Assembly: GCA_946965045.2 (NCBI GenBank)
Contig: OX337228.1
Span: 4,960,001 to 5,024,000, forward strand
Direction: 5' to 3'
DNA from: Epithemia pelagica
Taxonomy: Eukaryota; Protista; Bacillariophyta
Length of the DNA stretch: 64,000 nucleotides
The notes beneath the pieces are model-generated. The model was not told the DNA's origin and searched no databases. It was given only the letters and a program-made list of their open reading frames with translations. Each line of letters opens with the position of its first letter. Position 1 is the first letter of the stretch. This document shows, in pieces, positions 24,729-29,031 of this stretch. The position numbers were made by a program, and so were the translations under genes.

Positions 24729-26251
24729 ATGACTACCAATGCAAAAGACACATCAGGGGAACTCAGCCGGCCAGCACCAATATCAGCGACATCTTCAGTT
24801 GACAATCTCCAGGTTGCTACCAAATCGTCTATTGATGGAGTGGAGCAAACAAACGAAGGCAGATCTCGTGAAGGAGTAGCTGCGGAGTCAATAATGGTTC
24901 AATACGCCGATTCGAAGTCAAATCAACGCAATGAAGCCACCGTGAATGGTCCACTGGCTACAACAAGCCGCAGTAGTATCATATCACCTTCCGGTGGCCC
25001 ACTTGGAGGACCAGCGGGGAGCAATACCACCGCGCGAACGCATGGCATTCCGGCATTGCTCCTTCCTCCTCAGCATCAAACAAATGCAACACAACCTCAG
25101 ACAATCACTAGTTCAGGTCCTCTGGTGTTGACGGGGTTAGTGGCAGGATCACAGGCACCAGAATTTCTCTATCAGCTCACAAAAATGCTCACAGACGATA
25201 ACAGGGACACAATTGAATGGTGCAATGGTAGGTTTGGTATCGTGTTATTCTTGAAAGGAAGCGGAAGCATCTAATTCACGGCTTCTTCGTAACAGGCAAA
25301 ATTGAAGTTCACAGTCCTCAAAGGCTCGAATCGGATGTTCTGCACAAGTACTTTCGGCATTCAAAATTCGCTAGTTTCCAGCGTCAACTCAACTACTTCG
25401 GTTTTCGGAAACAAGCGGGGAAAGGGAAAATGGCGCCATGTTCGTACGTCAATGAGGATCTTCCTTCCAATGATCTTACTTGTCTTCTCAACATCAAGGT
25501 AAGTAAACCAGAATGTAAAACGGCCATTCTTGAAACCCTTCCTTACGCAAGCGTTTATCAGAGAAAAACGAGCGTCTCAACTGCAGCCAAAGAAAAGGAG
25601 AAACAGTCAAAGAAGAAAGAGCTTAAGATGACTCTGCAGAGCCACGAGCAGACAGCATCCAGTGTCAATCCGGTCTTAGCAGGGATTCTTCATCGCTCAT
25701 CAATGGCATCTACAGCCGAAGCAAAACTGTACTCATCGGAAACAACAACAAATGAATCACAGTCTGAGGCCACAAAATCTCATCACGCAGTAGCACAAGC
25801 AGCTGTGGGCCGGGGCATTCGCCATGGGGTAGGTCGCAGTCAAGTCCAGGTGAGCACTCGCTCTGGCCTGCTCTCGCAAACTGTACCGGTTGACGTGCCG
25901 TCTTCGGAACCGGAGGTAAAGCCTGCTGCAACCGTTGCAAATCCCCTGTCCCAACTAGCAACAAATTTTCAAAATTCGCTGAATGACCTGGTATCTGTTG
26001 ATGCTGTTCCGCAGGAACCAGCAGTGTCCACTACAACGATAAGCGACCAAGCTCTCTTTCCCGGTGGATTTCTAAGAAGAGACGATTCGTTGGTTGATCT
26101 CGCAATGATCCCTGTCGTTGAGAACAGCGAAGTGCCAGGTGAACTTCTTCAAGTTGGCACGAACAAAGAAGAAGCAACTGAAGATGTTGGACTTTGTTTC
26201 ATCGATTTCCCCAACCCAGATATCTTTCCCCTTGGACCAAAGCCCACCTAG
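24729..26251 (+). CDS. HSF: Heat shock transcription factor (diatom type, 3 exons)
   Basis: Exons 24729-25227, 25296-25498 and 25562-26251. DNA-binding domain [11 protein letters not shown]...IEWCNGKIEVH...[24 protein letters not shown]. Confidence 0.92.
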
Positions 26252-26396
26252 AACTTCAGTGTAGGTCACTTGTTCCCTCCAGAATCGCGACACGGGAGAG
26301 TGCGGATACCGCACTTTGTTGCTGTTCAGGCGAGGGAATCTTCAAAAATTCATCTGCATGCGGGTAGAAAGGGGAATGATCGTTTCTACCAGCCTC

Positions 26397-27656
26397 TTAG
26401 GTATCGGGAATGAGAACCGTTTGCGTCCAGTCAATATCGACGGACATAACGGAGTCGCATTCACTAGAATGAATGGCCTCTGGTAGATCGTCCGTGCATT
26501 CAGATGACACCACGCAAGATAGTTGCAGCTTGCAAACTCCATATCCGATAGGAACGACCATATGATAGCATGTATCATTATTTTCACTTGAATTCAGAGG
26601 TCTCCAGGTTATCCTCAACTGTTTCTCTCCGATAAAGTAGTCAGTTTTCGATCGTACACGATTTGAGAGGGCGATCAAATCAACATCAGTATCCACTGGC
26701 TTGATTTCAAGGAACACCAGCATCAGACACTCATTATTATTTTGTCGGTCTGCGGTGGTCGCAGACCGAAAGTCATGCCGTGATCGCTCCACAAGTTCAC
26801 CCAATTTCTCTTTGAGCTCGTCTGACCGCACATTGTGAATAGAGGATGCATGATCTTCGGTAGACGAATGTTCATGCCAGATGACGGTTATTACGGAAGC
26901 AAAAGCTGAAGGGCTGTCTCCATCCAATAGTTCTCTCGTAACGAGAACGAAAGCAAATGGCCTCATCGTTCCACTAACTGGCAACATTTCCCACACATGA
27001 AGTACGGGATCCCAAGCTTTCGACAGAAATTTATTCAAAATAATTTGCAATGTGTGTTCTTCGGCAAGTGTAACGATCAACATGAAGCCGCCCTGTGGGA
27101 CAAGAAGGCGGTGGGCTTCTCCAAAGAGTGCGGTGGATTGAAGTTTGTTTTCTTCAACCGCCTCTTTGGCAAATATAGCATCAACAAAACCCTTGTCGAT
27201 CCAGCAGTGAAAGGATGATCTGTCAAACTGCATGGGAGGTTTCAGAATATCTTCCAAGACGTACGAAACTTTAATTGGACTATCATCATGATTTCGTACG
27301 CTGTTGGACTTGTCATGAATCTGCCGCATCTCCGCAATGGCCGTCTCGGAAACATCGACCACCACCTGCTCATAATCTTCAAATTCTTCCCTCAGTACCA
27401 GAGGTAAGAGTGATGTTCCTGATCCGGGGTGTATCATGCGCATGCTCTCGTGACGAGACGTGGACCACGTCTTTTTCTGACTGTTCAAATGGTATGAAAT
27501 GACGCGAACAACCTCTTCAGGATTGCTGTACCATTCGAATGACTTGTGTCCATGCTGCACACAGACTAATTTGAACCAAGAATCCCAATACTCGGCATCT
27601 TGTCTTCCTGAAGGATCACCTAGACGACGAAGTTGTTCTTCAATGTTGAAGCTCAT
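26397..27656 (-). CDS. METTL13 N-terminal-like class I methyltransferase fused to an eEF1B C-terminal-like domain
   Basis: Single ORF. Methyltransferase motifs EYWDSWF, SFEWY, IHPGSGTS, VVDVSETAI, IDKGFVDAIF and VTLAEEH; eEF1B-like motifs LEIKPVDTDVDL..L...VRS, VVPIGYGVCKLQLSCVV and SVDID. Confidence 0.85.
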   Translation of the reverse strand: MSFNIEEQLRRLGDPSGRQDAEYWDSWFKLVCVQHGHKSFEWYSNPEEVVRVISYHLNSQKKTWSTSRHESMRMIHPGSGTSLLPLVLREEFEDYEQVVVDVSETAIAEMRQIHDKSNSVRNHDDSPIKVSYVLEDILKPPMQFDRSSFHCWIDKGFVDAIFAKEAVEENKLQSTALFGEAHRLLVPQGGFMLIVTLAEEHTLQIILNKFLSKAWDPVLHVWEMLPVSGTMRPFAFVLVTRELLDGDSPSAFASVITVIWHEHSSTEDHASSIHNVRSDELKEKLGELVERSRHDFRSATTADRQNNNECLMLVFLEIKPVDTDVDLIALSNRVRSKTDYFIGEKQLRITWRPLNSSENNDTCYHMVVPIGYGVCKLQLSCVVSSECTDDLPEAIHSSECDSVMSVDIDWTQTVLIPDT

Positions 27657-27966
27657 GTTGCAAGTAGACTGCACTGCGTGGATTGTGAGAGATTCTTGTG
27701 GGCATCTCGTTCATGTCTGGTATGGTTGTGTGGTCGCGTGGCCTCCCACAAACTCTCGCAAGTCACGTGACGTACAGACCGCAGCCCTAGCTAGCAAAAA
27801 GTACCAAGGTAGTCCTAACTACTCCTATACACCAGTAGACTTGAGGAGAATAGGAGTACTCCTAACTAATAACTCGTCGTCATAAAAGTGGTGACATCTA
27901 TTCGTACTGTCGTCATAATTTAATTTCATCATATTCATTTTCGATCATTGATGTAGGGTCGAGTTG

Positions 27967-29031
27967 CTAAACAATCGACTCACCGTCAACAGTTCCGGAA
28001 GCGGTTTCCGAGGAAACCGCTCTTTCCAAATCAAAATTACAGAGTGGGCACTTGACATGATTTCGCGTCCACGCTTGGATACACTCTTGGTGAAAGACGT
28101 GGCCGCATGGCAATTGAGTCAAAGCCTCAGACTCTTCATATTCTGACAAGCAAATGGAGCAATGGTTATCCATTTCCGTGTTCCCCTTTGTTGGTACAGC
28201 ACCGTAATCTCCCTTCTTGTCGACCACGAGGACGCCGCTTGTGGTCGAGGCTTTCCATTGGAATTGTTTCCATTGGGCTTGGGCCTCATCACTTACACCG
28301 GGCGACTGCAATTCTTCCGCTCCGTCTGGTCGACCATATCCACCTTCCATCATGTGTCGTTGGGATTCCATAATTGCCAGCGCCAATTGGGCTTGGAACG
28401 ATAACCGGGCGAATTCGTTGCGATCAACCTCTGTGGTATTGTTGTTATTCTGTAGGTAAGCTTCAATCCTTCGATCCAACTCTTCTTCACGTTCGCGGTT
28501 GAATCGGATCCAACGTGCGGTCCAAGAGGTACCCAATAAACAAAGAAGTAACAGAGTGGGGTCTCTCTTTTGCAAGCACTCAATCCACAGTCGAAAGAGG
28601 ACAAAGACAGCAAGCAGTACACACGCGGAAGAACGTCGACGCGACAATTCTCGTTGTTCTTCTAACTCCGCCAGCGTCATGGTGTTGCCCCGAGTTTCCG
28701 GTCCATGGATTGTGAATTCATCTGCAGTCACCGATTCTCGCTCATCACCAACCTGTTCACCATCGCCGGTGTCATCTTGTGCTTCTTGTTCATCCGAAAC
28801 ATTCGGACGGGTGGCTTCACTGTTGTTTCCAGCGGATGCCTCCGAGGAACGTTGTTGCTCATGTACAGCATCCGATATACCGGACTCCAAATCTTGCTCA
28901 CCAGAGCTACGAGCTGTCTCTTCATTCGATGCTACGCCGTCCTCCTCTTGAGCTTGCACACGTTCACTTCCATAACGAGCACGCTGCCGGTCAATGGCAA
29001 ACACATTGTTCAGAGCGGAACTGAGCGACAT
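27967..29031 (-). CDS. Membrane-anchored RING-H2 E3 ubiquitin ligase
   Basis: C-terminal CSICLSEY...LPCGHVFHQECIQAW...CPLC, with two hydrophobic segments (ACVLLAVFVLFRLWI; LLLLCLLGTSW). Confidence 0.9.
   Translation of the reverse strand: MSLSSALNNVFAIDRQRARYGSERVQAQEEDGVASNEETARSSGEQDLESGISDAVHEQQRSSEASAGNNSEATRPNVSDEQEAQDDTGDGEQVGDERESVTADEFTIHGPETRGNTMTLAELEEQRELSRRRSSACVLLAVFVLFRLWIECLQKRDPTLLLLCLLGTSWTARWIRFNREREEELDRRIEAYLQNNNNTTEVDRNEFARLSFQAQLALAIMESQRHMMEGGYGRPDGAEELQSPGVSDEAQAQWKQFQWKASTTSGVLVVDKKGDYGAVPTKGNTEMDNHCSICLSEYEESEALTQLPCGHVFHQECIQAWTRNHVKCPLCNFDLERAVSSETASGTVDGESIV

Follow-up and report, generated by a model that had tools for sequence, protein, structure and literature searches.

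Can a protein methyltransferase carry its own means of finding an elongation factor? The translation elongation factor eEF1A is among the most heavily methylated eukaryotic proteins; how its methyltransferases find their substrate and what role the marks play are poorly understood. The question is raised by a gene within a 64,000-nucleotide stretch of the diatom Epithemia pelagica (contig OX337228.1, positions 4,960,001 to 5,024,000 of the forward strand; hereafter the window, in whose coordinates positions are given), where one open reading frame (ORF) joins an apparent homologue of the N-terminal methyltransferase domain of METTL13 (METTL13-N, or MT13-N) to an EF1_GNE domain, the C-terminal exchange domain of eEF1B alpha, beta and delta. 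A first-pass annotation made from the sequence letters had described one uninterrupted frame with motifs of both kinds, giving no strand; the single frame at 26397-27656 is borne out and lies on the minus strand, and every motif listed occurs in the translation (YWDSWF, FEWY, GSGTS, DVS, DKGFVDA and TLAEEH in the first half; LEIKPVD, VPIGYGVCKLQ, CVV and SVD in the last 110 residues). This motif set, taken with the Pfam matches and the conservation among homologues, is far beyond chance. Our answer is that the fusion is probably an eEF1A-directed, possibly elongation factor-like protein (EFL)-directed, lysine methyltransferase in which an eEF1B-type domain, itself probably impaired in exchange, serves as a substrate dock.

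An exchange-factor domain without its exchange lysine

Residues 311-416 are a true EF1_GNE domain, as had been proposed from motifs for the last ~110 residues; an EF1_GNE or structural match had been named as the check on that proposal, and both kinds were found. Pfam EF1_GNE (PF00736) matches with an E-value (E) of 3e-9 and a score of 37.3 bits (cut-off 20.8). Even the single query sequence finds eEF1B chains of yeast and human origin in the PDB, at E ~1e-4. A profile of the family's C-domains matches yeast eEF1B alpha (1F60, 2B7B), human eEF1B beta (1B64) and eEF1B delta (2N51) at E-values of 1.6e-16 to 6e-16, in each case over nearly the whole domain. The AlphaFold2 (AF2) model of the C-domain alone has a predicted local distance difference test score (pLDDT) of 92.7, and in a VIA alignment this model superimposes on eEF1B delta in the human eEF1 complex (Z 12.5, root-mean-square deviation (rmsd) 2.2 Å, 36% identity) and on yeast eEF1B alpha bound to eEF1A (Z 12.1, rmsd 1.8 Å, 88 of 90 residues), the next unrelated folds reaching Z 8.7 at most. 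Over the eEF1B alpha, beta and delta structures compared (1F60, 5O8W, 9A9S) the fold is the same, with Z 12.1-12.5, rmsd 1.8-2.2 Å and 33-36% identity. Foldseek run on the full-length model likewise found yeast eEF1B alpha for the C-domain. A homologue search with residues 300-419 only returned the query itself and nothing else (17 candidates).

The fusion and eEF1B share the core motifs (I/V)KP.D, W, PIG(F/Y)G..KL and VQS.D, together with an aromatic residue equivalent to F163 of yeast eEF1B alpha, which plugs into a hydrophobic pocket of eEF1A domain 2 and whose mutation raises the dissociation constant (Kd) 6.5-fold (PMC10844748). That residue is Y372 here, and in the 132 fusions where the motif could be located the position is divided evenly between Phe (66) and Tyr (66). 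The end of the domain is where the two part company. Yeast eEF1B alpha reaches the nucleotide/Mg2+ site with K205, and exchange by the K205A mutant is 13-fold slower (PMC9292714). In the fusion the Gln-Lys exchange finger is replaced by a longer tail (residues 407-419) holding no Lys or Arg at all, and both HMMER and Pfam alignments to eEF1B end at VQSxD, before this tail. The counterpart of K205 is T413 in sequence register; in structural register, which runs to residue 416 (yeast 206), K205 falls near L415, and no Lys is found there either. Among the 137 fusions with a readable tail the K205-equivalent position is Thr in 106, Ser in 13 and Lys or Arg in none, Lys and Arg together account for at most 12% at any tail position, and the replacement follows a conserved pattern, D-[VI]-D-W-x-x-T-x-P-[VI].

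Two further differences from eEF1B are an extra loop of ~15-20 residues ahead of the PIGYG strand and a methyltransferase N-terminus where eEF1B has its N-terminal eEF1B gamma-binding and central acidic regions; upstream of the GNE domain Pfam finds nothing but methyltransferase families. With neither a K205 equivalent nor the N-terminal eEF1B regions, the protein was rejected as a canonical exchange factor.

A METTL13-like methyltransferase domain

Residues 20-245 are a METTL13-N homologue with intact S-adenosylmethionine (AdoMet)-binding and catalytic motifs. Pfam reports Methyltransf_31 (E 1.4e-7; 31.7 bits against a cut-off of 27), and hhalign, comparing the family alignment with an alignment of 15 proteins of METTL13 architecture, pairs query residues 20-245 with METTL13 13-219 (probability 99.9, E 4.3e-33, 30% identity). 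Scored with one family N-domain profile, an annotated insect METTL13 orthologue reaches 95.5 bits and human eEF1A-KMT4 (2PXX) 32.8 bits, so the METTL13-N assignment made in the first-pass annotation is right, and more exact than 'KMT4-like'; orthology to eEF1A-KMT4, far weaker by the same profile, was rejected. Among solved structures that enzyme (the ECE2 methyltransferase domain, acting on eEF1A Lys36; PMC5737405) is nevertheless the best match, both for the N-domain profile (E 4.1e-7) and in a Foldseek search of the PDB with the full-length AF2 model, where 2pxx comes first (E 6.7e-10, template modelling (TM) score 0.71). It shares Post II and the tunnel-forming N-terminal extension with the fusion, is single-domain, and is clearly farther from it than METTL13-N. 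In an Atlas fold search the best matches are METTL13 clusters, and language-model features concur.

The class I fold of the eEF1A-KMT4-like family is indicated by Pfam, the AF2 model, the 2pxx match, motif I and the acidic Post I residue. In motif I, H76, G78, G80 and S82 are invariant, the pattern H-x-G-x-G-x-S occurring in 138 of 138 fusions, and D101 of Post I is nearly invariant. This family comprises KMT4, KMT2, CS-KMT and METTL13-N, of which three of the four human members act on eEF1A (PMC5737405 and a review), MT13-N dimethylating eEF1A Lys55 in animals. Its signature is a Post II consensus, [D/E]-K-G-T-x-D, directly after strand 4, the charged residues of which are essential for KMT4 catalysis by mutagenesis (PMC5737405). 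Save for F or L at the fourth position, that signature is present as D-K-G-[F/L]-x-D-A in all 138 fusions, its charged and glycine residues here being D154, K155, G156 and D159. An N-terminal extension equivalent to the one that builds part of the substrate tunnel in eEF1A-KMT4 (PMC5737405) is present too, with G13, D14, P15, G17, W24, W27, F28, E41, W42 and Y43 invariant in the family alignment and GDPSG or GDPAG in 109 of the 138 fusions. By these marks of sequence and fold the protein belongs with the eEF1A-KMT4-like family while carrying a true EF1_GNE fold, and its methyltransferase activity is predicted.

The closest sequence relative of residues 20-245 is MT13-N of METTL13 (eEF1A-KNMT), with which they share the YW..FF..FEWY extension, Post II D-K-G-x-x-D-A, an SLA(E/Q)xH segment and extra strands past the core. 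The two differ in motif I, H-P-G-S-G-T-S in the fusion and G-C-G-N-S in METTL13, and in Post II, where METTL13 keeps the T. METTL13 then continues into MT13-C, its spermidine-synthase-like N-terminal methyltransferase domain, whereas the fusion has EF1_GNE there and no Spermine_synth match by Pfam in the ORF. Lacking MT13-C, and forming a separate clade in the tree described below, the protein was rejected as METTL13 proper.

Between the two modules the connector consists of a variable segment, a beta hairpin (255-277) and a long helix (278-306) leading into the C-domain, with AF2 pLDDT mostly 70-97 and with H261 and R293 conserved in the family; the full-length model has pLDDT 87.9 and a predicted TM score (pTM) of 0.72. 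The connector may still be METTL13-like: one Atlas METTL13 row covers query 41-305, by which the METTL13-like part may run through the hairpin and the helix to about residue 305. In the model the helical portion looks rigid.

Occurrence and ancestry of the fusion

The fused architecture is conserved across many species. Among 5.8 billion proteins searched, 72 full-length homologues were found (28-50% identity, 82-100% coverage), PF00736 being present in all, and the proteins fetched include at least 138 full-length relatives (at least 330 aa) with the fusion architecture. An alignment of 27 of the 72 homologues shows both halves conserved, and in the family alignment they are conserved equally, mean column identity being 35% in the N-domain and 36% in the C-domain. 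Searched exhaustively by HMMER with the N-domain profile, a set of 1.84 billion representative proteins gave 58 matches below 1e-30, which make up the fusion family, and a second tier of shorter fusions (330-440 aa) and of 650-950 aa proteins matching at the N-terminus only. The latter carry a C-terminal Spermine_synth domain by Pfam, which is the METTL13 architecture, and one of them, from the insect Ischnura elegans, is annotated as 'eEF1A lysine and N-terminal methyltransferase homolog'.

Named members of the fusion family include proteins of Phaeodactylum tricornutum (XP_002179735.1 / B7FYG4, annotated 'predicted protein') and Epithemia clementina, a Synedra protein from an MMETSP transcriptome, a protein of Triparma laevis, which belongs to the bolidophytes, the sister group of diatoms, and, in the distant tier, a truncated model from the animal-related ichthyosporean Ichthyophonus hoferi. 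In databases the relatives carry automatic labels such as 'EF-1beta' or 'predicted protein'. The N-termini of the distant fusions are METTL13-like, their Pfam EF1_GNE scores are stronger, at up to 69.5 bits, and they too have no lysine where K205 would fall.

For the methyltransferase domain a maximum-likelihood tree was built from 72 rows, 29 of them fusions and 43 METTL13-architecture proteins (600 aa or longer, with 185 or more profile positions matched; unclear architectures and fragments were excluded), with no outgroup and hence unrooted. One branch parts all 29 fusions from all 43 METTL13 proteins (ultrafast bootstrap (UFBoot) 100, Shimodaira-Hasegawa-like approximate likelihood-ratio test (SH-aLRT) 98, 100% of 200 bootstrap trees), so the fusions do not group with METTL13. 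Relative to METTL13 the clade would be either a derived branch or an old paralogue, the unrooted tree giving no direction, and its topology is compatible with a single origin of the fusion, which may have occurred.

Two metagenomic observations extend this picture. A distant fusion at L001 6001-7317 (P0242, in the cluster of P0164) lies on a gene-dense 355-kb contig of 66-71% guanine-cytosine content, and the gene and its neighbours occur also on a TARA Oceans metagenome scaffold, which places the fusion in a marine picoeukaryote outside the diatoms. A search with the distant-fusion alignment was swamped by low-complexity words and added only an ENA metagenome protein of 448 aa (P0249) that combines EF1_GNE with PhyH (PF05721, phytanoyl-CoA dioxygenase-type). 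Its GNE part is 72% identical to the GNE of a distant fusion (P0136), and the protein represents either a merged gene model or a further fusion of an enzyme with a GNE domain.

Function of the fusion protein

We propose that the eEF1B-like module would dock across domains 1 and 2 of EF-1alpha (eEF1A), or possibly of the paralogue EFL, and would do so only when neither aminoacyl-tRNA nor the true exchange factor occupies the site. Once docked, the module would keep the fused methyltransferase beside a lysine exposed on the GTPase domain, and the enzyme would then methylate that residue. The pocket that receives the eEF1B alpha plug is also the site of the aminoacyl-tRNA 3' end and of the Efm4/KMT2 hairpin, and eEF1B alpha competes with Efm4 (PMC10844748). 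By analogy, Efm4 (eEF1A-KMT2, or METTL10; Lys316/318), a member of the same KMT4-like family that fills the F163 pocket of eEF1A domain 2, offers a functional precedent for a methyltransferase docked at the eEF1B site. Efm4 uses a short beta hairpin and one Phe, whereas the diatom fusion has a whole eEF1B-type domain; Efm4 modifies a lysine adjacent to the pocket, while an enzyme docked through a GNE domain would be more likely to have one of domain 1 within reach. An exchange factor must part switch I and switch II, where Tyr56 and Trp58 stand next to Lys55 on helix A'. Because Lys55 is outside the eEF1B alpha interface and not buried, the enzyme could methylate a domain-1 lysine while docked.

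In Epithemia pelagica the partner may be EF-1alpha or EFL. EF-1alpha would be at least the ancestral partner, as is argued by the presence of the fusion in Phaeodactylum, which has EF-1alpha only, and in the bolidophyte Triparma, EF-1alpha having been found in the bolidophyte Bolidomonas.

The proposal of a self-docking methyltransferase must be tempered by several points. Both the binding of eEF1A and its methylation are steps that we infer; most diatoms translate with EFL and not with EF-1alpha; and the geometry of the linker comes from the AF2 model alone, without inter-domain error estimates. The F or L at the fourth Post II position departs from the family consensus, and a T-to-A mutant of KMT4 at that position shows reduced activity and no more than that (PMC5737405). 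Nor does loss of the lysine prove loss of exchange, because the K205A mutant of yeast eEF1B alpha retains partial function (PMC9292714) and the K205/Mg2+ mechanism is disputed by one structural study.

These last points bear on the choice, left open in the first-pass annotation, between a C-domain recruited for docking and one that couples nucleotide exchange to methylation. We favour docking, because the exchange lysine is absent here and from 137 of 137 relatives while the pocket aromatic is always kept; coupled exchange fares less well. It is unlikely, in our estimate, that the C-domain still works as an exchange factor for EF-1alpha, if perhaps a weaker one, or, in a variant of the same idea, that the fusion might be the main eEF1B-type protein of diatoms without detectable canonical eEF1B alpha. 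What speaks for a bifunctional protein is that the whole EF1_GNE core is kept, with an eEF1B alpha match at Z 12, that yeast K205A is slowed just 13-fold and still supports growth functions (PMC9292714), that a structural study credits wedging of the switch regions and not displacement of Mg2+ by K205, and that a survey detected no eEF1B alpha in the diatom Thalassiosira pseudonana (PMC3938643). However, the Gln-Lys tail to the nucleotide site has been swapped for the conserved D-[VI]-D-W-x-x-T-x-P in every fusion, and Phaeodactylum, with EF-1alpha only, has the fusion where a normal exchange factor is expected. A protein that docks on and marks EFL, or some other eEF1A-like GTPase (eRF3, Hbs1), through a re-tuned domain is about equally improbable. 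EFL is the main elongation factor in most diatoms, the tail and the LGDPSGRQD extension are family-specific and unlike eEF1B and METTL13, and the N-domain forms a clade apart from canonical METTL13, all of which would suit a changed partner; yet EFL lineages generally lose eEF1B alpha, which has been read as EFL having no use for the domain (PMC3938643), the fusion occurs in lineages with EF-1alpha (Phaeodactylum, and the bolidophytes through Triparma and Bolidomonas), and the F163-type plug is retained.

Docking by a live enzyme also has to be set against the view that one module is dead, the protein being for example a pseudo-methyltransferase scaffold or carrying a decaying eEF1B remnant. 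The off-consensus position in Post II, the missing exchange lysine and the 'decaying' eEF1B alpha recorded for some EFL lineages in a survey (PMC3938643) would fit such a relic, which we regard as very improbable: conservation is equal in the two halves across at least 138 proteins of distant lineages, no AdoMet-binding or charged Post II residue varies, the core motifs of the GNE domain are retained, and the conservation of the new tail bespeaks selection, not decay. There is next to no chance that two adjacent genes have been read as one. The RNA-like evidence in Epithemia pelagica is an assembled contig and not raw reads, which leaves that artefact some room, but the frame is open without a stop and needs no splice signal, the same fusion appears in the Synedra transcriptome protein and in many independent genomes, and AF2 places a continuous helix between the domains with high confidence; gene merging was rejected on these grounds.

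Implications for elongation factor biology

No paper describing this architecture came up in full-text searches of the literature on the fusion, the Phaeodactylum accessions or EF1_GNE, which agrees with its having been marked as uncharacterised at first pass. An eEF1B-kinase fusion of Thecamonas trahens, described in a survey remark, also joins an eEF1B-type domain to a protein-modifying enzyme; its partner, unlike that of the present fusion, is a kinase. MT13-N is less well characterised than MT13-C, mainly for the poor solubility of the recombinant domain (review). An MT13-N-type enzyme fused to an eEF1A-binding domain would be independent evidence that the clade acts on eEF1A-like factors far beyond animals and plants, and would give structural studies of substrate recognition a protein that docks itself and may be better behaved; the Phaeodactylum orthologue sits in a model diatom. 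The fusion is also a case of an exchange-factor domain apparently re-used as a substrate adaptor.

The lineages that carry the fusion (diatoms, and ichthyosporeans as a group) figure in the replacement of EF-1alpha by EFL. A survey (PMC3938643) records 'decaying eEF1B alpha' for Pythium ultimum and Guillardia theta and no eEF1B alpha for Thalassiosira, and divergent GNE domains of the fusion type could lie behind such calls. The fusion is in this respect a concrete candidate link between methylation, eEF1B alpha loss and the retention of divergent EF-1alpha. It is distinctly unlikely that in EFL diatoms without detectable eEF1B alpha the fusion is the sole surviving eEF1B-type protein, a nucleotide-state reader or residual exchange factor for divergent EF-1alpha (or EFL) that methylates only the tRNA-free, GDP-bound or empty form. 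If true, this would tie the G-protein cycle directly to methylation, and might account both for divergent EF-1alpha persisting in EFL lineages and for 'decaying eEF1B alpha'. The fusion is relevant to the study of eEF1A methylation and of EF-1alpha/EFL evolution, and overturns nothing in either field.

Gene structure and coordinates

The ORF extends over 26397..27674 on the minus strand if counted from an upstream GTG, with the ATG at 27656; from that ATG the coding sequence is complete and intron-less and encodes 419 aa, the stop codon occupying 26397-26399. Its base composition is ordinary for the surrounding region. The features discussed above are placed in Table 1, the coordinates of motif I, Post II and the C-terminal 49 residues having been verified by direct translation.

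Table 1. Positions in the window of the fusion gene and of the features it encodes.
Feature	Position	Strand	Basis or detail
Complete coding sequence	26397..27656	-	ORF list and translation; N-terminus lines up with homologue starts
N-terminal extension, residues 1-45	27522..27656	-	LGDPSGRQD (family-specific), YWDSWF and FEWY
Predicted METTL13-N-like seven-beta-strand lysine methyltransferase domain, residues 20-245	26922..27599	-	hhalign, Foldseek, Atlas
Motif I HPGSGTS, H76-S82, glycine-rich AdoMet-binding loop	27411..27431	-	Translation
Motif Post II DKGFVDA, D154-A160	27177..27197	-	Translation
Connector, residues 246-310	26727..26921	-	AF2 secondary structure
EF1_GNE domain, eEF1B alpha/beta/delta type, residues 311-416	26409..26726	-	Pfam, profile, fold
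Y372, equivalent of yeast eEF1B alpha F163	26541..26543	-	PIGYG aligned to PIGFG
Divergent C-terminal tail, residues 407-419	26400..26438	-	Translation

Expression and neighbouring genes

The fusion gene is expressed, as supported by one of four public runs from the same organism and study. All four consist of assembled contigs, none is on record as RNA, and transcript ends and strand are not visible in them. Two have long contigs of even depth, resemble genome assemblies, and may be the source of the window. Run X4 is transcriptome-like: one of its contigs is without the 63-nt GT..AG intron (25497-25559) of the convergent neighbour and is unbroken over 25560-27553, corresponding to residues ~35-419 and both domains, with no joint inside the ORF. 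Coverage of the intergenic positions 27559-27939 is zero in this run, and the neighbouring genes are ~10x deeper than the fusion gene. The contig supports an expressed, intron-free gene whose 3' end overlaps that of its convergent neighbour. Confirmation of a single transcript, called for in the first-pass annotation, was in this way obtained in part: an RNA-like contig passes unspliced over both domains, but the contig, being assembled, is no proof of a single transcript. Independent support for one mRNA comes from the Synedra transcriptome homologue.

The convergent neighbour (24729-26251, plus strand) consists, apart from the intron noted above, of two ORF pieces without a Pfam match. Only 145 nt separate its stop from that of the fusion gene, and since a single RNA-like contig extends over both genes, an overlap at the 3' ends is probable. 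The upstream neighbour (27967-29031, minus strand) encodes 354 aa with a C-terminal RING-H2 domain (zf-RING_2, E 1.8e-15) and a hydrophobic middle segment, and its coverage in run X4 is likewise ~10x that of the fusion gene. Single-base differences between the window and the run contigs occur inside the ORF at 26609, 26840 and 27621 and outside it at 25624, 25775, 26248 and 26264; they vary from run to run, are accompanied by no insertions or deletions, and look like allelic or strain variation.

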